This document shows, in pieces, positions 5,381 to 63,224 of a DNA stretch of 64,000 bases (position 1 is its first letter; every line of letters begins with the position of its first letter). The stretch comes from Ylistrum balloti (taxonomy: Eukaryota): contig NW_026782248.1 of the NCBI RefSeq assembly GCF_031769215.1, positions 434,001-498,000 on the forward strand, read 5' to 3'. A program made the position numbers and the translations under genes. The notes beneath the pieces were generated by a model. The model was not told the origin of the DNA, made no database searches, and was given only the letters and a program-made list of their open reading frames with translations.

Positions 5381-7929
5381 ATTCCTATTCCAGAAAAAAA
5401 ACATTTGAATCCCAAAAATAGATTTACAAATATATATCCAAACATTAACCCACTAGAATGTATCGAAACGAGGTTTACATGCAGACACTCTTTCTATTGA
5501 CGGGAACAAGCCAGCACTTCATGATCGACAATGTTCCGAAATCCACTCCAATTCATACTAATTCAAACGAAATATGATCGAATTGGATAAAAAGGCCACA
5601 AGCGTGAGAGATGACGTAATACTTTGACGTGTAGGGAGATGATTACTGTTCCTATCAGGACAAAAATCAAATATGTCTAACAGCTCTGTCTCCATTTTAG
5701 ATATCGAGTCGTATGTTCTGAGTCCGTATCGGAAGGATAAATGTAAAATACGGAATGACAATAAGAAGCGGGACGAACATAATTCAGACAAATTAATTAC
5801 AGTGGTATATGCTTAGCCGGGAGTTTGTAGAAATGGGACGCGGGAAAGCAGGGTTAGCTTTGTATAACATGCCATTTGATATGAAACTCATATTCATTCC
5901 CTTATATCAACTTACTGCAGCTTTTCACCACATTTTATACCACACGAAGCGCTGATTTTACTTGCAATTATGATAATTGTGTTGATTGTGTTTATCGGCG
6001 ATGATTTGTCTTCAAATTTATGAACTGATGGAAAAATAAGAACACTAATTCCTTGACATAATGACACCATTCAGTGGACGGATGAAAAACATCTTTTTGA
6101 ATACAACAGAAGGCAAACTTGGATCAGACGGGGGCATTGATTCCGTAATTTATACATAACATATCCACAGGCAACAATTTGTTCTGCCAAACAACATACA
6201 AGCATAATGAATAATTTGTATATTTTGTCACAAAAAGATACATAACAATACAGATCAGCACGAAGTTTAGTAATAAAACGCCAATAAATCAGTATCGAAA
6301 GTGTCTTGATTCACTGTGTAGTGTAGACATACATAGCCCCTGGCCATCCTGTGTCATGCACTGTATGCTTTGCCAATGACTGCCACTGTAATGCCACATT
6401 AACACATTATAACCTTGGAATTGTACCTGCAGGTCGTAGTTCCAACACAACATATATAAACAACTGTCTATTTTGATTGATTGACCACTAATAATGTAAG
6501 TCAATTCTAATATATAGAATGCCTGCCCAGATCTGTCAAAATTTTCCGGAATGATGTGTCCAAAATTTAAAAAATGAAAAAAGAGAAATTGGTTCAGTTA
6601 TGCGTGTTGTTAGAGCACTACATTACGACCCCGTGATGCAAATGCAGGGAGGGGCATTCCTATAACCTATAATTAAGTCCATTCGTTTCATTCTATCAGT
6701 ATGTTGTTTAGCGATAAGCTTGGTAGCCAATGGGGGAGGGGCGTGTGAACATGTTTCCAGATTGTAGAGAAATATGGCAACATTTCTTGTGTTTAAATGT
6801 CTTTTGACTAGATGTGTTACAGGCGATTTCAGTTGGATATGAGCAGAGCAGAAAAGATTCATGACTTTAAATAACGCCACCAGGGAACAGGGGCGAGCGT
6901 TGAACAATCTAGAGACAGGATGTGACGGGGCACTGTAGTGCACGGCGCGTAGGGCCCACCACTGGATAAAGCCTTATTATAAATTTGCACAAAATGTAGA
7001 GACAGCTAAACGTAAATGCATTGTATCCATCTGTCTGGTATACCTGTTTTATAGGAGTCAAGTTATCAAGTTCTTCAAAATTAAATATTTGTTTTCAATT
7101 AAGCACCCTGAGATAGTGAGGGACCTCCGTGAAACCAGGAACTACCTCCTTCTCCAACTAGAAAGGTCTTTATAATAATACACAGCGGGGAACACATATA
7201 CAGATCTAAAAAATACAATCTCCATTTATCGAAGTGACATCTATGAAACCAGGTTAATACTTCTTTCAGAATCAACCTTCCTCGTAATACTTCTGGATAC
7301 AAACACATGTGATTTTTTCATCTTAAATTAAACATTTCAATTGGTGTTTTAGAGCATTTTTAAAACACTGTATACATCGAGTTGTTCTCTACAAAAGTAC
7401 ATAAATTTTCAACTAATATTATGATTTTTCAAAATTTTTCGAGTACATAACATGATTCCCAAAAGAATACTTACATGCTTATTATAACAAATACAACAAA
7501 AATTAAACTTCCGGAGTTTTCTGTAGGAAAAGAACGATAAAAATCTACCTTTGTTTTTGAAATTTCCGGTAAACAATCCACAGACGGTATCCTTGTTCTG
7601 TAACGGTATGCCGTACACACCTGATCTGATCGCCTCAGTTACTAACTGACCCCGACAGGTATGTATTATGTCACAGTCACCTGTGTTTAGGTAAATGCAG
7701 GTAAATATAGCACAGGAGAGAGTTAATGCATTTATTTTTGATGCCACTTCATACTCGGTCTTAAAAATGGAGACTATTTGAACAGAACGTCTGAGTGTCT
7801 CGATATCGGCTGGGTTTTTAATGCAATGAAACTCCAATTCTTCGTCTACACATCAATGTGTCGTGATATCTTGTGGCACTATAAACGGCTACTGGTGGTA
7901 GTTAAATTTGTAAACGTCCCCATCGTATC

Positions 7930-18664: not shown

Positions 18665-20020
18665 GACAGGTGTGTACATAAGTGTCCAGTGTAAAACAGA
18701 TTTACCCAGGCGACAGGTGTGGACATTGCATATAGTCAGTGTAAAACAACCTAGCCAGGTGACGGGTTTGTACAAAAGTGAACAGTGTAAAACAGACTTA
18801 CCCAGGTGACAGGTGTGGACATTGCATATAGTCAGTTTAAAACAACCTAGCCAGGTGACGGGTTTGTACAAAAGTGAACAGTGTAAAACAGACTTACCCA
18901 GGTGACAGGTGTAGACATTGCATATAGTCAGTATAAAACAACCTAACCAGGTGACGGGTTTGTACAGAAGTGAACAGTGTAAAACAGACTTACCCAGGTG
19001 ACAGGTGTGGACATTGCATATAGTCAGTATAAAACAACCTAGCCAGGTGACGGGTTTGTACAAAAGTGAACAGTGTAAAACAGACTTACCCAGGTGACAG
19101 GTGTGGACATTGCATATAGTCAGTATAAAACAACCTAGCCAGGTGACGGGTTTGTACAAAAGTGAACAGTGTAAAACAGACTTACCCAGGTGACAGGCGT
19201 GGACATTGCATATAGTCAGTGTAAAGCAACCTAGCCAGGTGACGGGTTTGTACAAAAGTGAACAGTGTAAAACAGACTTACCCAGGTGACAGGTGTGGAC
19301 ATTGCATATAGTCAGTATAAAACAACCTAGCCAGGTGACGGGTTTGTACAAAAGTGAACAGTGTAAAACAGACTTACCCAGGTGACAGGTGTGGACATTG
19401 CATATAGTCAGTATAAAACAACTTAGCCAGGTGACGGGTTTGTACAAAAGTGAACAGTGTAAAACAGACTTACCCAGGTGACAGGTGTGGACATTGCATA
19501 TAGTCAGTGTAAAACAACCTAGCCAGGTGACGGGTTTGTACAAAAGTGAACAGTGTAAAACAGACTTACCCAGGTGACAGGTGTGGACATTGCATATAGT
19601 CAGTATAAAACAACCTAGCCAGGTGACGGGTTTGTACAAAAGTGAACAGTGTAAAACAGACTTACCAAGGTGACAGGTGTAGACATTGCATATAGTCAGT
19701 ATAAAAACCTAACCAGGTGACGGGTTTGTACAGAAGTGAACAGTGTAAAACAGACTTACCCAGGTGACAGGTGTGGACATTGCATATAGTCAGTATAAAA
19801 CAACCTAGCCAGGTGACGGGTTTGTACATAAATGGACAGTGTAAAACAGACTTATCCAGGTGACAGGTGTGGACATTGCATATAGTCAGTATAAAACAAC
19901 CTAGCCAGGTGACGGGTTTGTACATACGTAGTCAGTGTAAAACATACTTACTCAGGTGACAGGTGTTGACATCTGTACATACGTGGTCATTGTAAACAAA
20001 CTTACTCAGGTGACGAGTGT
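18665..20020. repeat. 96-bp minisatellite (dimer of about 48-bp subunits), about 13 copies with degenerate edges
   Basis: Period of 96 measured (18804 to 18900). Each half begins ccaggtgac. It explains the 385-aa ORF. Confidence 0.95.
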
Positions 20021-24179: not shown

Positions 24180-25855
24180 GTGAGAGGTCTGTCAAAAACA
24201 CTTGCCAATATACTGAGAGGTCTGTCAAAAACACATGACAGTATACTGAGAGGTCTGTGAAAAACACATGACAGTATACTGAGAGGTCTGTGAAAAACAC
24301 ATGACAGTATACTGAAAGGCCTGTGAAAAACACATGACAGTATACTGAGAGGTCTGTGAAAAACACATGACAGTATACTGAAAGGCCTGTGAAAAGCACA
24401 TGACAGTATACTGAGCGGTCTGTGAAAAACACATGACAGTATACTGAGAGGTCTGTGAAAAACACATGACAGTATACTGAAAGACCTGTGAAAAACACAT
24501 GACAGTATACTGAGAGGTCTGTGAAAAACACATGACAGTATACTGAAAGGCCTGTGAAAAACACATGACAGTATACTGAAAGGCTTGTGAAAAACACATG
24601 ACAGTATACTGAGAGGTCTGTGAAAAACACGTGACAGTATACTGAAAGACCTGTGAAAAACACATGACAGTATACTGAGAGGTCTGTGAAAAACACATGA
24701 CAGTATACTGAGAGTCTGTGAAAAACACATGACAGTATACTGAAAAAAACACATGACAGTATACTGAAAGGCCTGTGAAAAACACAGACAGTATACTGAG
24801 AGGTCTGTGAAAAACACATGACAGTATACTGAAAGGCCTGTGAAAAGCACATGACAGTATAGAGGTCTGTGAAAAACACATGACAGTATACTGAGAGGTC
24901 TGTGAAAAACACATGACAGTATACTGAAAGACCTGTGAAAAACACATGACAGTATACTGAGAGGTCTGTGAAAAACACATGACAGTATACTGAAAGGCCT
25001 GTGAAAAACACATGACAGTGAAAGGCTTGTGAAAAACACATGACAGTATACTGAGAGGTCTGTGAAAAACACGTGACAGTATACTGAAAGACCTGTGAAA
25101 AACACATGACAGTATACTGAGAGGTCTGTGAAAAACACATGACAGTATACTGAGAGGTCTGTGAAAAACACATGACAGTATACTGAAAGGCCTGTGAAAA
25201 GCACATGACAGTATACTGAGCGGTCTGTGAAAAACACATGACAGTATACTGAGAGGTCTGTGAAAAACACATGACAGTATACTGAAAGACCTGTGAAAAA
25301 CACATGACAGTATACTGAGAGGTCTGTGAAAAACACATGACAGTATACTGAGAGGTCTGTCAAAAACACATGACAGTATACTGAAAGGCTTGTGAAAAAC
25401 ACATGACAGTATACTGAGAGGTCTGTGAAAAACACATGACAGTATACTGAAAGGCCTGTGAAAAACACATGACATTATACTGAAAGGCCTGTCAAAAACA
25501 CATGACAGTATACTGAGAGGTCTGTGAAAAACACATGACAGTATACTGAGAGGTCTGTCAAAAATACATGACAGTATACTGAGAGGTCTGTGAAAAACAC
25601 ATGACAGTATACTGAGAGGTCTGTCAAAAACACATGACAGTATACTGAGAGGTCTGTGAAAAACACATGAAAGTATACCGAAAGGCCTGTGAAAAACACA
25701 TGACAGTATACTGAAAGGCCTGTGAAAAACACATGATAGTATACTGAGAGGTCTGTGAAAAACACATGACAGTATACTGAAAGGCTTGTGAAAAACACAT
25801 GACAGTATACTGAAAGGCCTGTCAAAAACACATGACAGTATACTGAAAGACCCTG
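24180..25855. repeat. 33-bp minisatellite, about 50 copies
   Basis: Unit tactgagaggtctgtgaaaaacacatgacagta, period 33. It explains the ORFs at 23969-25867. Confidence 0.97.
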
Positions 25856-26379: not shown

Positions 26380-29070
26380 ACCTGTCGATAACGTGTAATA
26401 TCTATCTAATAGACCACTCTCTATAACGACCATCTGTATATATCTACTACGCACTTGTAGCTAAAATCTGTCTCTAACATGTAATATCTACCTTGATAGT
26501 CCATTCTCTATAACGACCATCTCTATATATCTTCTACGCAACTATAGCTAACACCTGTCTGTAGCGTGTAATATCTTCAATGATATAGCACTCTATATAA
26601 CGACCATCTGTATAGATCTACTACGTGCCTAAAGCTATCACCTGTCTATAAGGAATCAACTCTTCATAGAGATAGTAGCTATAGGTTGTACAGGTATACT
26701 GTAACTATTGGGTGTATTGGTATACTGTAATTATAGGTTGTACTGGTATACTGTAACTATAGGTTGTACAGGTATACTGTAACTATAGGTTGTACTGGTA
26801 TATTGTAACTATAGGTTGTACTGGTATAATGTAACTATAAATTGTACTGGTATACTGTAACTATAGGTTGTACAGGTATACTGTAACTATAGGTTGTACT
26901 GGTAGATTGTAACTATTGGGTGTACTGGTATACTGTAACTATAGGTTGTACTAGTATATTGTAACTATTGGGTGTACTGGTATACTGTAACTATATGGTG
27001 CACTGGTATACTGTAACTATAGATTGTACTAGTATATTGTAACTATTGGGTGTACTGGTATACTGTAACTATTGGGTGTACTGGTATATTGTAACTATAG
27101 GTTGTACAGGTATACTGTAACTATTGGGTGTACTGGTATACTGTAACTATTGGGTGTACTGGTATACTGTAACTATAGGTTGTACTGTAACTATAGGTCG
27201 TACTGTAACTATAGGTTGTACTGGTATACTGTAACTATAGGTTGTACTGGTATACTGTAACTATATGGTGCACTGGTATATTGTAACTATAGGTTGTACT
27301 GGTATACTGTAACTATATGGTGCACTGGTATACTGTAACTATAGGTTGTACTGGTATACTGTAACTATATGGTGCACTGGTATATTGTAACTATAGGTTG
27401 TACTGGTATAATGTAACTATAGGTTGTACAGGTATACTGTAACTATAGGTTGTACTAGTATACTGTAACTATAGGTTGTACTGGTATACTGTAACTATAG
27501 GTTGTACTGGTATACTGTAACTATAGGTTGTACTGGTATATTGTAACTATAGGTTGTACTGGTATACTGTAACTATAGGTTGTACTGGTATACTGTAACT
27601 ATAGGTTGTACTGGTATACTGTAACTATAGGTTGTACTGTAACTATAGGTCGTACTGTAACTATAGGTTGTACTGATATATTGTAACTATAGGTTGTACT
27701 GGTATACTGTAACTATATGGTGCACTGGTATATTGTAACTATAGGTTGTACTGGTATAATGTAACTATAGGTTGTACTGGTATACTGTAACTATAGGCTG
27801 TACTGTAACTATAGGTTGTACTGGTATACTGTAACTATAGGTTGTACTGGTGTACTGTAACTATAGGTTGTACTGGTGTACTGTAACTATAGGTTGTACA
27901 GGTATACTGTAACTATAGGTTGTACTGGTATACTGTAACTATAGGTTGTACAGGTATACTGTAACTATAGGTTGTACTGGTGTACTGTAACTATAGGTTG
28001 TACTGGTATACTGTAACTATAGGTTGTCCTGGTGTACTGTAACTATAGGCTGTACTGTAACTATAGGTTGTACTGGTATACTGTAACTATAGGTTGTACT
28101 GGTATACTGTAACTATAGGTTGTACTGTAACTATAGGTACTGTAACTATAGGTTGTACTGGTGTACTGTAACTATAGGTTGTCCTGGTGTACTGTAACTA
28201 TAGGCTGTACTGTAACTATAGGTTGTACTGGTGTACTGTAACTATAGGTTGTACTGGTATACTGTAACTATAGGTTGTACAGGTATTCTGTAACTAAAGG
28301 TTGTACAGGTATACTGTAACTACAGGTTGTACTGGTAGATTGTAACTATAGGTTGTACTGGTATACTGTAACTATAGGTTGTACTGGTATACTGTAACTA
28401 TACTGGTATACTGTAACTATAGGTTATACTGGTATACTGTAACTATAGGTTGTACTGGTATACTGTAACTATAGGTTGTCCTGGTGTACTGTAACTATAG
28501 GTTGTACAGGTATACTGTAACTATAGGTTGTACTGGTATACTGTAACTATAGGTTGTACTGGTATATTGTAACTATAGGTTGTACTGGTATACTGTAACT
28601 ATATGGTGCACTGATATACCGTCATTAGCGATTATCTACATAGGAAGACCAGTTTTCTCATTCTTAAGATAATTTCACGTATTAAGCGAAATATGATGAA
28701 TATATCTATATACTACCTATGGCGACCACATGTCTAGGAAGAAAATCTCCTTCTTGTAGCAGTTTAAGGCACTCTCTATAACGACCATCTGTCAAGGAAG
28801 ACGGTTCTCTCTACCACGATGACAGTTATATACACTCTCTATTGCAGCCTTCTGTCTGGGAAGATCAGTTATCTAAAACCTATTGGCAGTTTCATAGACT
28901 CTCTTTGGGTTCCATATCTCTTAAAAGACCATTTATTTTTACTCAAGCGGTTGTTTTATATACTCTCAAATGCGAACGCCTGCCTAGGAATACCAGTTCT
29001 CTGATGGCAATTTGTTGACTCTCTATAACGATCACCTGTATAGGAGAGACCATCCTCTCTATCCTAAAGG
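26380..29070. mobile_element. MITE-like fragments (ctctataacgacca-ctgt motif) flanking the 26-bp satellite
   Basis: The motif recurs three times in ~100-bp degenerate repeats at 26390-26650, and again near 28772 and 29020. Confidence 0.45.
26680..28612. repeat. 26-bp minisatellite, about 70 copies with truncated variants
   Basis: Unit gtatactgtaactataggttgtactg, period 26 (27481 to 27507). Confidence 0.97.
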
Positions 29071-37370: not shown

Positions 37371-37425
37371 TTAAAAACCAATTTAGAATTAGACACAATA
37401 TAAGCAAATTACAAATTGAAACTGC

Positions 37426-37875
37426 GCCATACAACTGTTTCGTCCTTCTAGGACTCATAAGTGATACTACATCATAAAGTTGTTTCGTCCTTCTAGGACT
37501 CGTCAGTGAAAATACATCATACAGCTATTTCATCCTTCCAGGACTCATCAGTGATGCTACATCATACAGTTGTTTCGTCCTTCCAGGACTCATCAGTTAT
37601 GCTACATCATACAACTTTTTCGTCCTTCTAGGACTCATCAGTGATGCTACATCATACAGCTGTTTCGTCATTCCAGGACTTCTGGGAGATGCTAAATCAT
37701 ACAACTGTTTCCTCTTTCTAGGACTCAATCGGTGATGCTACATCATATAGCTGTTTCGTCCTTCTAGGACACGTCAGTGATGCTACCTCGTACACCTGTT
37801 TCGTCCTTCTAGGACTCATCAGTTATAATACATCATACAGCTGTTTCGTCCTTCTAGGACTCGTCAGTGATGCTA
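37426..37875 (-). ncRNA. Tandem array of 10 minimal type I hammerhead ribozymes (45-bp unit)
   Basis: Minus-strand unit: UAG CAUCA CUGAUGA GUCC UAGAA GGAC GAA AC AGCU GU A UGAUG. This is stem I 5', the CUGANGA core, stem II, GAAA, a 2-bp stem III with palindromic loop, the GUA cleavage triplet, and stem I 3'. Period 45 (one 46). Confidence 0.92.
37831..37875 (-). ncRNA. Fully canonical hammerhead copy (rightmost); predicted cleavage between 37836 and 37835
   Basis: CAUCA-CUGACGA-GUCC-UAGAA-GGAC-GAA-ACAGCUGU-A-UGAUG: all core nucleotides are present and stems I and II pair perfectly. Confidence 0.9.
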
Positions 37876-38169
37876 GGTGTCTAGACTATTGAAACCTAGA
37901 AGGCGACCGCGTAAAACTGGTTAAAATAAGAGGTACATGAACCATAAAAAATATGAATTTTGATATTGATAACTTCTCTTCTTCGAAAGCACTATATTGT
38001 GTTGTTGCTTGTTCCCACCATCCAAATTGATTTTATTGTTCATAAATTTATCAGATGAAAAACGTCTCATTTGCGATATTAAATATAATGCACTATAACT
38101 ACATACTTTTGTGAACTACAGTCCCCCTATTTAATTGACACACTGTTTCACCAAGGTGAAGCCGTACTC

Positions 38170-39130
38170 AATGTATCATGTTCCACAAACTAGTAGTGTA
38201 GAGATAGTGCAGACATTTTTGTTAACTATGTGGTAACTCAAAGGTCCATAATGTAGAACTTTGGGTAAGTCAAAGGTCAAAATGTAGGTCAGAATGAGAT
38301 ATGTTTGATACCATAATTGCAACATTGCCTCAACAGAGTGAAGCTTTACCCAAGGTATGAAGTTCAAGTGTAAGATTCGAGACAAACGGAAAAAAACGTA
38401 AAGACGGAAGGACGGAAAGACAATAAAAAAGAGATCTCATAGGGATCTCGGCGCCCACCATTGTTTGATCTTTATATGCTCTTTTAAAGTTGGATCTTTT
38501 CCCTTTTTTCTCTTCCCCTCTATGTTTTTGCTTTTAATGATAAGACATTTCAACATTCCTTTGCAGAAATAGCGATGATAGTGACTAGCAAAATCCAAAA
38601 TGGCTGCTTGTTGGCCATTTTGTTTGTCTGATCAGTCTCAAACAGGCACAACAAGGGATCAAAGAAAGCAAACACATGAAATTTGAAGAAGATCTATGTT
38701 GTAGTTCCGAACTGGAGTCAAGAAATAGCGATCACAGACCCAAAATAAACTGGAACAACTAGGAACCAATGAGAACCGACTTATGAAATTTAACAAAGAT
38801 CTATGAAGTTCCTCTTAAGAAATAGCGATAACAAACTTTCAAATTAAAAATTAAAGATGGCCACCTGTCGGCCATTGTGTTTTTCTGATTAATCCCTAAA
38901 TTAGATTGCAATAACTAGGGACCAAAAGGAACCTATATATGGAAGTTTAGAAAGATCTATGGGGTAGTTCTCAAGAAATAGCGAAAACAAACTTGCAAAG
39001 TCAAAATCTAATATGGCCGTCTTTCGGCCATTTTGTTTTTCTGATCAGTCCCAAAATCACATGGGCACAACTAGAGACCATGGGTAACCTATATATGCAA
39101 TTTGAGAAAGATCCTTCGAGTAATTCTAAA
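38170..39130. mobile_element. Adjacent non-autonomous elements with tgacc/ggtca motifs, a GACG-type tail and ~155-bp core repeats
   Basis: gacggaaggacggaaagac near 38403. gaaatagcga...atggc...ggccattttgttt.tctgatcagtc blocks at about 38565, 38820 and 38977. Confidence 0.55.
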
Positions 39131-40249: not shown

Positions 40250-40775
40250 TTAAAACTAAATAAATCATTCAACATTACAATAGCCGACCAAATCAGTCAA
40301 CATTACAATAATCGATCAAATCAGTCAACATTACAATAACCGAGCAAATCATTCAATATTACAATAACCGATCAAATCAGTCAACATTACAATAACCGAG
40401 CAAATCATTCAATATTACAATAACCGATCAAATCCGTCAACATTACAATAACCGAGCAAATCATTCAATATTACAATAACCGATCAAATCAGTCAACATT
40501 ACAATAACCGAGCAAATCATTCAATATTACAATAACCGATCAAATCAGTCAACATTACAATAACCGATCAAATCATTCAACATTACAATAACCGATCAAA
40601 TCAGTCAACATTACAATAACCGATCAAATCAGTCAACATTACAATAACCGATCCAATCAGTCAACATTACAATAACCGATCAAATCATTCAACATTACAA
40701 TAACCGATCAAATCAGTCAACATTACAATAACCGATCAAATCAGTCAACATTACAATAACCGATCAAATCAGTCA
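40250..40775. repeat. 28-bp minisatellite, about 19 copies
   Basis: Unit aacattacaataaccgatcaaatcagtc, period 28. Confidence 0.95.
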
Positions 40776-44299: not shown

Positions 44300-46260
44300 C
44301 CAACAACGTACCTGTGTGTCAACGTACTCAGGACTCAATGTATCAAAATGTGGACGTACCAAGGTGTCAACGAACAAGGCACGGTATCAGCGTACCAAGG
44401 ACTCAATGCACCAGAGTGCAACGTACCAAGGAGTCAACGAACCAGGAACGGTATCAGCGTACCAAGGACTCAATGCACCAGAGTGCGAACGTGTCATGAC
44501 GTCAATGAAGCAGGTACAACGATGTCTACATAACAAGGTGTATATTTACCAAGGTACTGTACCAAGGAGCCAAAATACCAAGGTCTCAACAAATCCAGAT
44601 ACCAGCGTACCAAAGTGTTAACACACTAAGGTTTTTTTTTACAGTATCAAACGGTAACGTACACCACTGTCAGTCAGCCTACGAAGATGTCAATGTCCAA
44701 AGATATCCAAAAGATTCAGTGCACTATCTTATCAACATATTAACGTTTTTACCGTTCTATGGTGTCAACTGAATACCTCAATGTGTCAACGTCCAAAGAT
44801 GTCAACGTATCCAGGGTTCAAAGGTTCTATGGTGTCAACTGAACACTCCAATGTGTCAACGTCCCAAGATGTCAACAAACCGAGGTGCCAAAGTCCCTAG
44901 ATGTCAAGGTACCAAGGTGTCAACAAACCAAGGTGCCAACGTATCCAGGATTTAAAGGTTCTATGGTGTCAACTTAACACTCCAATGTGTCAACGTCCCA
45001 AGATGTCAACAAACCGAGGTGCCAACGTATCCAGGTTTCAAAGGTTCTATGGTGTCAACTGAACACTCCAATGTGTCAACGTCCCAAGATGTCAACAAAC
45101 CGAGGTGCCAACGTATCCAGGCTTTAAAGGTTCTATGGTGTCAACTGAATACTCTAATGTGTCAACGTCCCAAGATGTCAACAAACCGAGGTGCCAACGT
45201 ATCCAGGTTTCAAAGGTTCTATGGTGTCAATGAACACTCCAATGTGTCAACGTGCCAAGATGTCAACAAGCCGAGGTGCCAACGTATCCAGGTTTCAAAG
45301 GTTCTATAGTGTCAACTGAACACTCCAATGTGTCAACGTGCCAAGATGTCATCAAGCCGAGGTGCCAACGTATCCAGGCTTTAAAGGTTCTATGGTGTCA
45401 ACTGAATACTCTAATGTGTCAACGTCCCAAGATGTAAACAAACCGAGGTGCCAACGTATCCAGGTTTCAAAGGTTCTATGGTGTTAACTGGACACTCGAA
45501 AGTGTCAACGTCCCAAGATGTCAACGTATCCAGGTTTCAAAGGTTCTATGGTGTCAACTGAACACTCCAATGTGTCAAAGTCCCAAGATGTCATCAAGCC
45601 GAGGTGCCAACGTATCCAGGCTTTAAAGGTTCTATGGTGTCAACTGAATACTCTAATGTGTCAACGTCCCAAGATGTCAACAAACCGAGGTGCTTAAGTC
45701 CCTAGATGTCAAGGTATCAAGGTGTCAACAAACCAAGGTGCCAACGTATCCAGGTTTCAAAGGTTATATGGTGTCAACTGAACACTCCAATGTGTCAATG
45801 TCCCAAGATGTCATCAAGCCGAGGTGCCAACGTATCCAGGCTTTAAAGGTTCTATGGTGTCAACTGAATACTCTAATGTGTCAACTTCCCAAGATGTCAA
45901 CAAACCGAGGTGCCAACGTATCCAGGTTTCAAAGGTTCTATGGTGTCAACTGAACACTTCAATGTGCCAACGTTCCCAGGTGTCAACAAACCGAGGTGCC
46001 AACGTATCCAGGTTTCAAAGGTTCTATGGTGTCAGCGAAATATTCCAATGTGTCAACGTTCTCAGGTGTCAACGTATCGAGGTTTTTAACGTACTTTAAT
46101 GTCAACTGAATACTCTAATGTGTCAACGCACAAAGAAGTCAATATACCAAGGTGTTTTGGTACTAAAGCTCCGGTGCAATATTTTGTCAACACAATAGGT
46201 ATCGCACCCAGGTGTCAACAAAGCAAGGTGTCAACGACGTAAGGTGTCAACGATCCTAGG
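44300..46260. repeat. 86-bp satellite built from gtgtcaac/gtaccaag subrepeats, with degenerate flanks
   Basis: Period 86 (45011 to 45097 to 45183). The core array spans about 44760-46140. Confidence 0.92.
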
Positions 46261-46929: not shown

Positions 46930-47760
46930 GTAGCATTACTGAGGGAGAGAAATAACATCCAGGGCGGGTAAATGTGGCATTAGTCATGACGGGTAACATT
47001 ATTCAGGGAGGGCAACATTATGAACGGAGGGTAACATTATTAATGGAGGGTAACATTATTCATGGACAGCAACATTATTCATGGAGAGAAATATCATTCA
47101 GGGAGGGTAAATGTGGCATTAGTCATGACGGGTAACATTATTCAGGGAGGGCAACATTATGAACGGAGGGTAACATTATTAATGGAGGGTAACATTATTC
47201 ATGGACAGCAACATTATTCATGGAGAGAAATATCATTCAGGGAGGGTAAATGTGGCATTAGTCATGACGAGTAACATTATTCAAGGAGGGTTGTTATTAT
47301 TTATGAAGGGTAACATCATTCATGGAGGGCAACATTATCAATGGAGGGTAACGTTATTAATGGAGGGAAACATCATTCATGGACAGCAACATTATTCACG
47401 GAGGGTAACATTATTCATGGAGGGCAACATTATCAATGGAGGGTAACGTTATTAATGGAGGGAAACATCATTCATGGAGGGCAACATTATTAACGGAGGG
47501 TAACGTTATTAATGGAGGGTAACGTTACTGAGGGAGAGAAATAGCATCCAGGGTGGGTTAATGTAGCATTAGTCATGACGGGTAACATCATTCAGGGCGG
47601 GCAACATTATTCAGGAAGGGTTGTTATCATTTTTTAAGGGTAACGTTATTAATGAAGGGTAACAATATTTATGAAGGGTCAAATTCATGAGGGGTTACAT
47701 TATTCATGGAGGGTCTTATTATTTTGGGAGGATATCATTATTCACGGAGGGTAACGTTAT
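46930..47760. repeat. Degenerate ggagggtaacattattcat minisatellite with a 139-bp higher-order duplication
   Basis: The gagagaaata...ggtaaatgtggcattagtcatgac block recurs at about 46945, 47084 and 47223. Confidence 0.85.
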
Positions 47761-47789
47761 TTTTGTGGAATGGGTAATTTTGTAGAAGT

Positions 47790-48360
47790 TAGTGGTTTCT
47801 CTATTAAACACCATGCGGGAGGGTAACGTGGTTATTTTTGTGGGTTTCTCTATTAAACACCAATGGGTTTCTCTATTAAACACCAATTTTGTAGAAGTTA
47901 TTAAACACCATGCGGGAGGCCGGTAACTTTGGCTGGTGGTTTCTCTATTAAACACCATGCGGGAGGCCGGTAACTTTGGCTGACACATTAAACACCATGC
48001 GGGAGGCCGGTAACTTTGGCTGACATTCTCGTGGTTTCTCTATTAAACACCATGCGGGAGGCCGGTAACTTTGGCTGACATTCTCGTGGTTTCTCTATTA
48101 AACACCATGCGGGAGGCCGGTAACTTTGGCTGACATTCTCGTGGTTTCTCTATTAAACACCATGCGGGAGGCCGGTAACTTTGGCTGACATTCTCGTGGT
48201 TTCTCTATTAAACACCATGCGGGAGGCCGGTAACTTTGGCTGACATTCTCGTAGTTTCTCTATTAAACACCATGCGGGAGGCCGGTAACTTTGGCTGACA
48301 TTCTCGTGGTTTCTCTATTAAACACCATGCGGGAGGCCGGTAACTTTGGCTGACATTCTC
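47790..48360. repeat. 55-bp minisatellite: six near-identical copies (48031-48360) plus a degenerate lead-in
   Basis: Unit gtggtttctctattaaacaccatgcgggaggccggtaactttggctgacattctc. Confidence 0.95.
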
Positions 48361-50104: not shown

Positions 50105-50660
50105 AGGGAAGCTACATACAGTGTGTGAGGCGAGTGTTTGAGGACAAACTGAAGCCACATACAGTGTGTGAGGCGAGTGTTAGAGGACAAACTGAAGCCA
50201 CATACAGTGTGTGAGGTGAGTGTTAGAGGACAAACTGAACCTACATACAGTGTATGAGGTGAGTGTTAGAGGACAAACTGAAGCTACATACAGTGTGTGA
50301 GGTGAGTGTTAAGAGGACAAACTGAAGCTACATACAGTGTGTGAGGCGAGTGATAGAGGACAAACTGAAGCTACATACAGTGTGTGAGGCAAGTGTTAGA
50401 GGACAAACTGAAGCTAAATACAGTGTGTGAGGCGAGTAACAGAGGACAAACTGAAGCTACATACAGTGTGTGAGGCGAGTGTTAGAGGACAAACTGAAGC
50501 TACATACAGTGTGTGAGGCGAGTGATAGAGGACAAACTGAAGCCACCTAGTGTGTGAGCTGAATGTTAGAGGACAAACTGAAGCTACATACAGTGTGGAA
50601 GGCGAGTGATAGAGGACAAACTGAAGCTACATACAGTGTGGAAGGCGAGTGATAGAGGAT
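50105..50660. repeat. 43-bp minisatellite, about 12-13 copies
   Basis: Unit gaggacaaactgaagctacatacagtgtgtgaggcgagtgtta. Confidence 0.95.
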
Positions 50661-53399: not shown

Positions 53400-53574
53400 N
53401 NNNNNNNNNNNNNNNNNNNNNNNNNNNNNNNNNNNNNNNNNNNNNNNNNNNNNNNNNNNNNNNNNNNNNNNNNNNNNNNNNNNNNNNNNNNNNNNNNNNN
53501 NNNNNNNNNNNNNNNNNNNNNNNNNNNNNNNNNNNNNNNNNNNNNNNNNNNNNNNNNNNNNNNNNNNNNNNNNN
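53400..53574. other. Assembly gap (175 N)
   Basis: Run of n characters. Confidence 1.
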
Positions 53575-53720: not shown

Positions 53721-54657
53721 TCTTACCAAGCAACCTATTTTTCAAAATGTGACAGAAAGCACTATCATTTTATGTTTTAATACAAGACAAACCTCAGATT
53801 TCCTCAGTATTCACCTGTAAGACTGTGTTGGTCGGAAAACACCTTGCATGAAAGCCTCTGCAGTGTCGGTGTTCTTAACCCCGCCCTCATCCCCCTTAAA
53901 CCCTCAACCCCAAGCCCCGCTTAACCTCAGCCCCCAAACCCCTTGTTTTTGAACTTAAATCAATTTCATTGCATAAATATTATAGAAAAGGATCGGACGC
54001 AAGCTGTCACAACATATATCCTCTCCATAATACAATTATACATGTGAATAACTTAGAAATGGCCCAAAGTTAGACCCCTGTCTTTCTGGATTTAAATATT
54101 TGCAGAAATTGAGAGATTTATTTGATTTTTGTTCTCTCTCGACTCTTTCGACTTCGGTGCACGATATTCGAGAAGGTAGATAACTCGTCCACGATCACGA
54201 CAGTCCCAAACCGATTTTTTAAAATCTATTTGCTACTGTTGTGTCCGATATTATCGTAAAGATAAGGTAACTCGTTATCCATATATCCATACCAACACTC
54301 GGTATCAAAACAAAACAGCATACAACATCTCTACTATCATCCTTGTTTCATTTACCGACTACTAAACAGCTGTCAGATGGTATTTGTTTAGAATGTATAT
54401 ACAATCTCATTCTGTGAAGTAGATAAATGGAATTGCGTCCGTTGGGAATGAAAGACTGTTTATTTAGGAAATGTTGTCAACATTCAACAATCATCAGTGT
54501 AATCTGGGTGACAGTTGTATGAAATGCCAGCCTATTGGCCGGATGTCGTAAAATGTATTTATCTGTCAGACTGCAATCTTACAACCTGACAACTATTTCA
54601 TAGTTATGTATCAACGTCAAATACCATTTCAAAATAAGACCTTGTTAAAAAAAAACT

Positions 54658-54975
54658 CCGACCAGAGCGAACCAAACAAACAACTCAGACCAGAGCGAAC
54701 CAAACAACCAAACAACTCAGACCAGAGCGAACCAAACAACCAAACAATTCAGACCAGAGCGAACCAAACAACCAAACAACTCGGACCAGAGCGAACCAAA
54801 CAACCAAACAACTCGGACCAGAGCGAACCAAACAACCAAACAACTCAGACCAGAGCGAACCAAACAACCAAACAACTCGGACCAGAGCGAACCAAACAAC
54901 CAAACAACTCGGACCAGAGCGAACGAAACAACCAAACAACTCAGACCAGAGCGAACGAAACAAACAACTCAGACA
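54658..54975. repeat. 32-bp minisatellite, about 10 copies
   Basis: Unit gaccagagcgaaccaaacaaccaaacaactcg. It explains the ORFs at 54606-55058. Confidence 0.95.
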
Positions 54976-60180: not shown

Positions 60181-60419
60181 AGGTCTCCAAGTTCACTTAC
60201 TGTCTGTACTTTGCTCAAAGAGAAGCGGTACAGAAAATGAAGTGGAATGAGGGTCCTGAATTTAATGAGATTTATAAGTAAAGACACCTTCCATTGGATA
60301 GAGTTAAGAGTGTATAACTAAGCCCTCCTTTCATTAACTATAGTAATACATAAAGACTTATCTCATTTGATAGACCTTTGATTAAAGACACCTTCATTTG
60401 TCTGGAATTATCATTAATG

Positions 60420-60870
60420 CCACCTACCATAGCATAGAAGTATCACTAAAGACACCTCCCATAGCATAGAGTTATCACGAAAGACACCTCCCATAGCATA
60501 GAATTATCACTAAAGACACCTCCCATAGCATAGAGTTATCACGAAAGACACCTCCCATAGCATAGAATTATCACTAAAGACACCTCCCATAACATAAAAT
60601 TATCACTAAAGACACCTCCCATAGCATAGAATTGTCACTAAAGACACCTCCCATAGCAAAGAATTATCACTAAAGACACCTCCCATAGCATAGAATTATC
60701 ACTAAAGACACCTCCCATAGCATAGAATTATCACTAAAGACACCTCCCATAGCATAGAATTATCACTAAAGACACCTCCCATAAAATAAAATTATCACTA
60801 AAGACACCTCCCAGAGGATAGAATTGTCACTAAATACACCTCCCAGTGGACAGAATTATCACTAAAGACA
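60420..60870. repeat. 32-bp minisatellite, about 14 copies
   Basis: Unit actaaagacacctcccatagcatagaattatc, period 32. Confidence 0.95.
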
Positions 60871-63224
60871 CAATCCATTATTTGTGTAGAAAATTGTCTT
60901 TAGTTGTCTACCGTTACAACTGAAGACACTTCGCAATGGCCACAGTTTTTAACCCAAGCCAGTTCCATTGACTGAAGTCATAAATGAAGACACTTAAAAC
61001 GCGTTAAAACCAAAGACTCGCGTCGAAATTTGAACTAAAAGGTGCTTTTCACTTGTGTCTTTTTGTACCATCTTATAGACTGCAGCAGGCAAGGTAGCAT
61101 TGCCGCAACAATCAACCAATATGAAAGCAGACGAATACGGAGCAAAGAATCAAGACACTAATATTTGTGTTTGATTTTATGATGCTTCCTGTGTATCTAG
61201 TATACCATACGTCAGTTTAAGCTTGCTCACTTAATTTGCATATCCACCATTTTGGTTTTTGAATATACATGAAAGTATAACAGGAGAACAGAGAACGGGT
61301 GCAGTCTTAAAAATAACGGGGCCGGGCACATTTTCATTGGTCAATTATTTCACCTGACACCGTTCCGTATGCAATGATATATCAAAATATTCATAACATT
61401 AACGTTAATTTTTCCGAGGTTTTCACAAGAAAACAAGAACCTGAAGCGGTAAGTTCTATATAATATTTGACGTCATGTTACAAAATGGCAAGATATCACC
61501 GTTTTCGATGACTTTGGAGGACATTACTTGGTTGTATCCTTCGAGAACGGCAAGTTTCACCGTATGTAATATACAGAACCGAATCGATATTTTCAGATTC
61601 CGGAAACAATACCAAAGAAGAAGCAGATTAAAACGTTCCTCAGACCTTTGAAATGGCCAATAATGCATTTGTGGTCAAAAGTTGAAGGGGTCAGCAACGG
61701 GGCAATTAAGCTTATAACTTGCAGAACGGTTAATGAAAACAAAAACCATCAATAGGTATTCTGAACCCGGTGTCACCGTCCATCCGTTTTACCCAATAAT
61801 AACTAGATTGTTACTGTATGGCCACCAGAAGGGCGTGAGCGTTTGTAAAGTTATAGAAAGTCGAACACAGTTCAAATGTAAATGTGAATGACAGATTCAC
61901 TTGAATCATTGGCGGTTGTAGGTGTATATAGCTATATAAAGTACAGGGTTATAGGTGTATATAGGTATTTATAGTTTACGGCTGTAAGTGTATATAGGTA
62001 TATATTTAAAACAAAAAGTCCGCAGGACCGCCATTGTTATTTATACTTACGTTAAGTTGGAAAACACTCCGAAACGAAGACTTTAGAGTGCGAGATATTA
62101 AACAAACATATATCTACATCCACTTATCATTTCTACTCGAAAACTTTTCAGTGTCATCTAAGATGTATTTCCTGTTTTCTATTGTTTAAATGTAAATAAA
62201 ACCGGAAGTATCATATGCTTTCTACTTCCGTTTGTCACACTAAATTTGCCTACAGTATTAGAGGCTTTCCACATTAAAACAAACCGGAAAAACTCCCGCC
62301 AAGTAACAACACTTAGTCACCATTCGCTTCTAACCCTTCCCACTCCCCCATCCAACGAGTCCGGTGTTCTAGAGGTGAGTGTAGCGTGAACTTCTCTCCT
62401 CTTTTCCGGGACTTGAATCACAATAAGAGACTGTCTACTAAGATAACTTCCCGATTGTAATATCCGCTGTCATTGACTTGGTGGCTTTTATGACTAAAAT
62501 GCTAAAGTTCACGAGGGCCTGTCGAATTGTCATGTCACGTGCACGTGGTCAAGTACATTCACCATTTCATCATGAGGTCGGGGATCATACATATATATAT
62601 AATTTAAAAAGATAAAAACTTTGTGTATTGTATATACAGAGAAATATATTTATATATACGCTTGTGTTATCTTTAAAAGATAATTACGTTTTATTCATCA
62701 AACAAACTAGCTAGTTTGGTGACTTAAAATATTATTGAAAATATATCAAGAAGCATCAATTTCATTTTAAACACTCTTATACGGGAAATATGCAAGGCAT
62801 GAAACAATGACTTGAGGTCAGGTATATGTTTTATTATTATCATTATTATTATTTTTGCATGTAAACCTGCGAATGTGAGACAAGACATATGCATGCTAAA
62901 CAAAAAGCAAGAATTGTACGTTCATCCGATATCGACGTATGTGTACATACAAGTTATTTGACACTTAAATCATATGAACTAGAAAGATCTCATCAAAATT
63001 CTGTTGGAAGACATTGAAAACGATAATTATAGAGACCAACCGTTGAAATTATGTTATACACGTGCAGTACACGTGTTTCTTCAGACGTTTATTAAGTTCA
63101 TACGTGTTAATTAAGTATCATATGAATGTTAAAACAAATCATGGGAATTTTTTCGCGTGCAACCTATTAACGTAGTAAAATGAGCATATAACAAGTATTT
63201 GTTTCTATTTCATGCAAAGTCGTT

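Follow-up and report, generated by a model that had tools for sequence, protein, structure and literature searches.

A tandem array of 45-bp units, each laid out as a minimal hammerhead ribozyme, in a minisatellite-rich stretch of Ylistrum balloti DNA

How does a tandem repeat come to consist of hammerhead ribozymes and of nothing else? The ribozyme-bearing repeats of animals, such as retrozymes, newt satellite 2 and schistosome Sm-alpha, hold one hammerhead per 150-500 bp. In the 64,000-nucleotide stretch of Ylistrum balloti DNA analysed here (the window), ten 45-bp units follow one another head to tail on the minus strand at 37423-37875, and each of them, read on that strand, amounts to an entire minimal hammerhead that runs into the next without a spacer. 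The locus thus poses the questions of what its units are, whether they could still act as ribozymes and by which route, through RNA or at the level of DNA, such an array could have been made.

The array and its hammerhead units

Tandem Repeats Finder (TRF) places the array at 37428-37875, with a period of 45, 9.9 copies, 82% matches and no indels, and segmentation of the minus strand in register takes it to 37423 and resolves the ten units, one of which is 46 bp long. Aligned in register, the units have a mean column identity of 89%, with 23 of the 45 columns invariant. The GC content of the array is 42% and that of the window 36%. An earlier, sequence-only reading of the locus had described the 45-bp monomer as exactly one hammerhead, present in ten copies without spacer, and both TRF and the segmentation confirm this. 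The units, named m1 to m10 from right to left in window coordinates, are as follows.

37423-37875, minus strand: whole array, ten units and, at 37875-37874, 2 nt (TA) from a unit before m1, from TRF and alignment
37829-37873, minus strand: unit m1, with CUGACGA; helix I 5/5, helix II 4/4 and helix III 2/2 pairs; GUA cut site at 37836/37835
37784-37828, minus strand: unit m2, core kept; helix I broken, including the core-adjacent pair (C1.1 opposite A2.1)
37648-37783, minus strand: units m3, m4 and m5, cores dead as judged by sequence
Within 37648-37783, minus strand: unit m3, A9>U and G16.2>A
Within 37648-37783, minus strand: unit m4 (46 nt), U4>C, a 1-nt insertion in the core, helix II broken
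Within 37648-37783, minus strand: unit m5, CCCAGAA where CUGANGA is expected
37468-37647, minus strand: units m6 to m9, cores kept, one or two helix defects apiece
Within 37468-37647, minus strand: unit m6, C15.2>A
Within 37468-37647, minus strand: unit m7, a single helix I mismatch
Within 37468-37647, minus strand: unit m8, G-U at 10.1-11.1 and U at 15.2
Within 37468-37647, minus strand: unit m9, helix I weak, G16.2>U
37423-37467, minus strand: unit m10, core G5>U; helix I with a degenerate 3' strand where the array ends

Read 5' to 3', a unit begins with the helix I strand CAUCA, which is followed by CUGANGA, by helix II (GUCC/GGAC with the loop UAGAA) and by GAAA, and it ends with C, AGCU, G and UA, the cut, the helix I strand UGAUG and 3 bases that lead into the next unit. 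The junction between units is the 3-nt loop that closes helix I. Helix II is 4-5 bp long and free of bulges, the fifth pair, U-A, being added by ViennaRNA, while helix III comprises 2 bp capped by the loop AGCU, and GUA precedes the cut. Since helix III consists of these 2 bp and the loop AGCU, ACAGCUGU, which extends from A15.1 across the loop to U16.1, reads as an 8-nt palindrome. The anatomy given by the sequence-only reading (CAUCA/UGAUG, CUGANGA, GUCC/GGAC, GAAA and a helix III of 2 bp) is the layout found in every unit, the coordinates that it assigned to the cut site of the last copy, 37836/37835, are correct, and its division of the copies by their cores is exact: counted from left to right, copies 2, 3, 4, 5, 9 and 10 (m9, m8, m7, m6, m2 and m1) keep CUGANGA, and copies 1, 6, 7 and 8 (m10, m5, m4 and m3) carry core changes.

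Several searches point to the hammerhead as the identity of the unit. A 25-nt pattern that spans the core and helix II gave 8 matches with at most three mismatches, all of them inside the array, against 0 in 100 shuffles of the window. In a permissive Rfam scan (64 kb, both strands, 4227 families) every match was to a hammerhead of the array, bar one weak microRNA (E 0.39). Hammerhead_1 matched unit m1 with 32.7 bits and a window-wide E of 3e-4, and Hammerhead_3 matched in the array with 39.7, 33.4 and 32.2 bits (E 4e-5 to 6e-3), crossing unit junctions at 37612-37662 (39.7 bits, E 4e-5) and at 37522-37572 (33.4 bits). In the Hammerhead_3 alignment, helix I is the local hairpin UGAUG-UAG-CAUCA and helix III pairs neighbouring units. 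At gathering thresholds the whole-window Rfam scan returned no match, the best scores being 32.7 against 34 for Hammerhead_1 and 39.7 against 48.5 for Hammerhead_3. The type I model, a scan with which had been suggested as a check on the locus, recognises m1 at a score slightly below the curated cut-off.

How much weight should this shortfall carry? The 25-nt module of core and helix II occurs, letter for letter, in 20 metagenome and 2 viral contigs, which are unrelated and carry it in single type I hammerheads with GUC sites, whose helices I and III are of full length, helix III being long and helix I reading AGAUUAA/UUAAUCU; there are several such hammerheads per contig. Examples of exact matches to the module are these.

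Contig L010: 1823-1847, 2129-2153 and 4563-4587
Contig L002: 1007-1031 and 4459-4483

Among the canonical-looking type I hammerheads with an identical core in the metagenome contigs, none attains the Rfam gathering score of Hammerhead_1. Since these module-bearing type I hammerheads miss the threshold too, it is a poor test for this sub-type. One of the metagenome contigs that carry the module (L017, 48.8 kb) also carries a tRNA and, at 6893-6948, a separate type III hammerhead that scores 49.0 bits in Rfam, just over gathering.

Neither the pattern search nor Rfam found a hammerhead elsewhere in the 64-kb window, outside the array. A junction-specific 20-mer of the array had no match in prokaryote genomes or viral contigs, and a protein search with the open frame of the array was blank when word-based and yielded two spurious low-complexity proteins when exhaustive. 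At the level of sequence the hammerhead assignment of the array is secure, and that the array is hammerhead-derived is close to certain.

Decay of the units and predicted folding

Whether the units could still cleave can be judged by the rules of Perreault et al. 2011 (PMC3088659), under which a hammerhead is accepted if its core is complete and no mispair adjoins the core. The core tested comprises C3 U4 G5 A6 N7 G8 A9, G12 A13 A14, A15.1-U16.1 and H17 (Rfam clan CL00010). The consensus and six of the ten units (m1, m2, m6, m7, m8 and m9) have this conserved core, which is damaged in m3, m4, m5 and m10. As for the helices, those of m1 are perfect; m6, m7 and m9 have one or two defects apiece, all distal, and pass, m8 passes with a G-U wobble at 10.1-11.1, and m2 fails at 1.1-2.1. 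Taken together, the rules leave one unit fully intact (m1) and four borderline (m6-m9), while five (m2, m3, m4, m5 and m10) fail and are predicted to be catalytically dead.

The substitutions themselves carry no demonstrable mark of selection. They fall on 6 of 110 core positions (5.5%) and on 36 of 340 positions elsewhere (10.6%), a difference that is not significant as a sign of selection on the core (p=0.13); no substitution touches GAAA or the 5' strand of helix II, and N7, where any base is allowed, ranks with the most variable positions. A test of 11 pairs of the type I structure for covariation found none: compensatory changes are absent, and 87.3% of the cells are paired against 88.0% in shuffles. 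Complementary variants of helix III in neighbouring units (CAGUUG/CAACUG) were considered as well and are attributable to chance, with 47 paired positions against a permuted mean of 47.9 (P=0.86); neighbour junctions with a perfect helix III number two, fewer than in most permutations of the unit order. It is therefore likely that the array is a relic copy, decayed without demonstrable constraint.

The consensus and the real units also part ways in their predicted folding. For the consensus dimer, ViennaRNA gives a minimum free energy (MFE) of -27.9 kcal/mol, and the structure is exactly the double hammerhead, in which helix I occurs once on the outside and once as an inner hairpin, there are two helices II, the 8-bp helix III is shared and both cores are unpaired; two separate type I folds of the same dimer reach only -11.0 kcal/mol. 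In a single consensus unit a misfold at -13.0 kcal/mol is favoured over the type I fold at -5.5 kcal/mol, and consensus 3-, 4- and 10-mers are predicted to form stacked hammerhead three-way junctions with unpaired cores. This predicted behaviour of the consensus agrees with what has been published on animal type I hammerheads whose helix III has 1-2 bp and a small palindromic loop and which are weak as monomers and active as tandem dimers (PMC4209133, PMC7229834, PMC6155905). Real neighbouring units reach only -0.7 to -11 kcal/mol in the double-hammerhead fold, their MFEs lying between -18 and -24 kcal/mol, and a helix III shared between units has a probability of essentially zero when the ensemble of the real array is considered.

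Since the real units are predicted to prefer non-ribozyme folds, a clean 45-nt ladder is not to be expected from this locus. The suggestion that a transcript of the array would be cut into 45-nt monomers thus does not hold for the locus as it now stands, where five of the ten units fail the acceptance rules and other folds are predicted for the decayed ones. At best, it is plausible that cuts would occur after m1 and after m5-m9, which would release one piece of ~181 nt and three or four pieces of 45 nt.

The state of the units also bears on the idea that the array serves its host as a cis-acting cassette that cleaves minus-strand transcripts, for example by destabilising or processing an intron-containing pre-mRNA. 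While the intact unit m1 could be taken to favour such a role, half of the units are dead by sequence, the core is not significantly spared, compensatory changes are absent, the real sequence is not predicted to adopt the ribozyme fold and no gene is recognised around the array. The sequence-only reading had raised an RNA-cleaving cassette as one possible function; since the pattern of substitutions shows no constraint, we find the idea unsupported and consider it very unlikely.

Routes by which the array may have arisen

Relative to the consensus, each unit carries 1-7 substitutions, 42 in total. Eight variant states occur in at least two units, where independent mutation would lead one to expect 6.5 (P=0.28), and neighbouring units are no closer to each other than distant ones (7.8 against 7.3 differences). 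A sharing of variants that is near chance and a lack of similarity between neighbours fit an origin in one burst followed by independent decay: it looks as if ten identical units had been made at once and had then decayed independently. The array does not have the neighbour-similar pattern of ongoing unequal exchange, a comparison in which ten units have little power.

The same differences speak to the possibility that the array is an artefact of assembly, in which longer retrozyme units were collapsed or joined into a chimera. Tandem repeats are error-prone in assemblies and the window has a gap at 53400-53574. However, units that differ by 1-7 substitutions, one of them with an indel, look like distinct copies and not like a stuttering read, and the junctions with the unique flanks are clean, so that an artefact of this kind appears extremely unlikely.

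If the array was made in one burst, was it made in place or did it arrive as an insertion? The flanks hold the following features.

37415-37422: ATTGAAAC, left copy of a candidate 8-bp target-site duplication, abutting the degenerate edge of m10 (37423) and 5 nt outside the TRF start at 37428
37888-37895: ATTGAAAC, right copy of the candidate 8-bp target-site duplication, 12 nt outside the array end at 37875
37895-37906, plus strand: CCTAGAAGG-CGA, a possible inverted 9+3-nt fragment of helix II and its loop, marginal

An 8-bp direct repeat shared between the 30-nt flanks has P=0.008 against shuffles and is met at 2.1% of random non-repeat sites of the window; as a target-site duplication it is a candidate, no more. 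Both ends of the array lie a few bases 3' of the cut site, in the region of helix I and loop 1, and so at about the same phase, which fits a self-cleaved multimer and an in-place duplication of one unit equally well. The flanks were not found repeated elsewhere in the window, and local alignment detected no similarity between them and the unit in the same sense (P 0.69-0.84). In the inverted sense, the fragment at 37895-37906 scores 19 when aligned with the unit, where shuffles average 13.1 (P=0.03). An inverted truncated copy is frequent at one end of Penelope-like insertions (PMC8557442); the fragment seen here is too short to be called such an end.

The wider surroundings hold little that resembles a retroelement. 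None of the 20 longest non-repeat ORFs of the window contains a reverse transcriptase, an endonuclease or any other Pfam domain, which indicates that there is no Penelope-like ORF nearby, and the window yielded no tRNA and the array no recognisable gene around it. The window is crowded with unrelated minisatellites, whose periods run from 26 to 172 bp and whose copies number up to 75; more than 12 of them have periods of 26-156 bp.

First part of the window, minisatellites: 127-2361, 18665-19972, 24181-25846, 26675-28619 and 40262-40775
Second part of the window, minisatellites: 44754-46154, 46944-47761, 47987-48360, 50108-50659, 54650-54967 and 60405-60871

In one minisatellite of the window (55 bp x 6.8) the copies are 99% identical, and the long ORFs of the window all lie inside minisatellite arrays. 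From this crowd of ordinary minisatellites it is clear that array formation at the DNA level is active in the window. At 38589-39113, 0.7 kb from the hammerhead array, there are about three copies of a ~156-bp repeat, each with the palindromic core AAATGGCCG-N5-CGGCCATTT; the repeat is perhaps a small mobile element or satellite in its own right. The stretch at 53400-53574 is a run of 175 N, either a gap or masked sequence.

It is possible that the hammerhead array is simply another DNA-level minisatellite, in which a single hammerhead was duplicated in place, or which is internal to another transposable element and travels with it, and in which the ribozyme is incidental. The seed for duplication in place would have been the hammerhead of a retrozyme, of a Penelope-type pseudo-LTR (pLTR) or of a dispersed solo copy, multiplied by slippage or unequal exchange. 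Such an origin would sit well with the more than 12 unrelated minisatellites of the window, with a core and a pairing that show no selective constraint, with array ends at about the same unit phase, as if one 45-bp segment had been duplicated, and with the lack of a reverse transcriptase among the 20 longest non-repeat ORFs nearby. However, a blind DNA process has no reason to choose a period that is nearly the minimum for a whole hammerhead. Moreover, the flanks contain neither retrozyme-like nor unit-like sequence, the candidate target-site duplication suggests insertion over growth in place, and there is none of the neighbour similarity or higher-order repetition that unequal exchange leaves, although ten units give little power on this point. 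We take a DNA-level origin to be a tentative but serious alternative.

The reading that we place first, at a probability of roughly 0.5, is that the array is a spacer-less derivative of animal retrozymes that spread through RNA. The sequence-only reading had raised an ultra-minimal retrozyme or rolling-circle product, which we consider plausible. The ancestral unit would have been a complete hammerhead of the animal type, from which all non-ribozyme sequence had been lost, with animal non-LTR retrozymes or the hammerheads of Penelope-like elements as its source. In a multimeric minus-strand transcript of the consensus, neighbouring units would pair through the palindrome into double hammerheads, which would cut after GUA and release 45-nt monomers. 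The monomers, or circles derived from them, would then have been copied by the reverse transcriptase of a retroelement into head-to-tail cDNA, either by rolling circle or by template jumping from end to end, and the cDNA would have been inserted as a ready-made array of roughly 0.4-1 kb. The array at this locus would be an old insertion from one burst that has since undergone neutral decay. We infer self-cleavage, circles, reverse transcription and insertion alike.

What favours this RNA route is that the period is almost the shortest that keeps the whole ribozyme with every helix closed, that the consensus dimer is predicted to fold as a double hammerhead, and that the array has the look of having been made in a burst and is bracketed by a candidate target-site duplication. 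The RNA route is weakened by the lack of a reverse transcriptase or endonuclease domain in the 20 longest non-repeat ORFs, by a candidate duplication that is only 8 bp long, not flush with the array on the right and of P 0.01-0.02, by array ends at about the same phase, which also fit duplication in place, by the wealth of ordinary minisatellites in the window and by the absence of any unit at the Rfam gathering score. A bolder extension of the RNA route, which we regard as rather doubtful, is that the 45-nt unit is the smallest self-cleaving mobile RNA, a retrozyme of which nothing but the ribozyme is left. Younger arrays elsewhere in the genome would be transcribed and cut by double hammerheads into 45-nt monomers, which would be ligated into 45-nt circles, or used end to end, and turned again into complete genomic arrays by the reverse transcriptase of a Penelope-like or other element.

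Significance and comparison with known ribozyme-bearing repeats

The 45-nt repeat is far smaller than any known ribozyme-carrying mobile element, and to our knowledge the smallest self-cleaving circular RNAs are well above 100 nt. In the literature that we searched we found no ribozyme-only repeat, no such repeat of 45 nt and no paper with the sequence of the array; an earlier description of a ribozyme-only repeat may exist. Taken alone, the locus is a dead copy and the value lies in the 45-nt repeat family. If a family of ribozyme-only repeats exists, it would move the lower size limit of a self-processing, and possibly mobile, genetic element to a new value, it would be a natural test of whether a bare double hammerhead suffices for cleavage, circularisation and spread by reverse transcription, and it would provide a template from nature on which very small circular RNAs could be made. 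If such repeats are instead DNA-level minisatellites seeded by a ribozyme, they would show how retroelement ribozymes become satellite DNA, and they would serve as a warning that counts of hammerheads in invertebrate genomes are inflated by such arrays.

Among known systems, animal non-LTR retrozymes carry type I hammerheads in tandem repeats (Cervera and de la Pena 2020, PMC7229834; Li et al. 2026, preprint, 10.64898/2026.07.22.740005), and their monomers of about 150-450 bp include a non-ribozyme body (PMC7229834, PMC7761336). Like these, the array is arranged head to tail, is low in GC (42%) and has a similar total length, and its hammerhead is of type I, with a helix II of 4 bp, a helix III of 1-2 bp and a small palindromic loop. 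Unlike these, with their 150-450 bp, it has a monomer of 45 bp that is ribozyme throughout, and its helix I is closed by a 3-nt loop at the unit junction. Since there is no non-ribozyme spacer, the unit has no rod-like self-paired body. The sequence-only reading had placed the unit with the animal type I hammerheads that have a tiny palindromic helix III and had noted a monomer far below retrozyme size, and it was right on both counts. Of the traits by which a retrozyme would be recognised, the array thus has the type I hammerhead in low-GC head-to-tail repeats and lacks the monomer size and the body; as to multiple copies with duplications, there is one array in the window, with one candidate 8-bp duplication (P 0.01-0.02).

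Penelope-like elements carry minimal type I hammerheads, two copies of which join by a palindromic region of helix III and act together as a dimer (Cervera and de la Pena 2014, PMC4209133); minimal hammerheads of these elements are also attributed to Lunse et al. 2017 in a citation given in PMC6765202. These ribozymes typically lack helix III and have a long, bulged helix II of 6-8 bp, and they sit in pseudo-LTRs ~3 kb apart, around an ORF for reverse transcriptase and GIY-YIG (PMC4209133). The array resembles them in its small type I hammerhead, in the predicted need for a partner copy and in the palindromic helix III region, theirs being tied to invertebrate retroelements. It differs in a helix II of 4-5 bp without bulge, in a helix III of 2 bp with a 4-nt loop and in copies that abut one another. 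Both in context, where no such ORF was found among the 20 longest non-repeat ORFs and no hammerhead outside the array in the 64 kb, and in architecture, the array does not conform to a Penelope pLTR.

The double hammerhead is known from newt satellite 2 and from avocado sunblotch viroid (Forster et al. 1988, as summarised in PMC6155905). There, too, tandem copies share an extended helix III and both sites are cut, and the MFE structure predicted for the consensus dimer of the array is the same fold. The newt satellite has a monomer of ~330 bp and the viroid is a 247-nt replicon, whereas the ribozymes of the array are contiguous. Sm-alpha of Schistosoma and pDo500 of cave crickets are satellite or SINE-like tandem DNAs whose transcripts contain a type I hammerhead, and the array shares with them that it is tandem DNA which encodes such a hammerhead. 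However, their units run to hundreds of bp, with promoters or other sequence and one ribozyme per long unit, while the unit of the array is the ribozyme alone.
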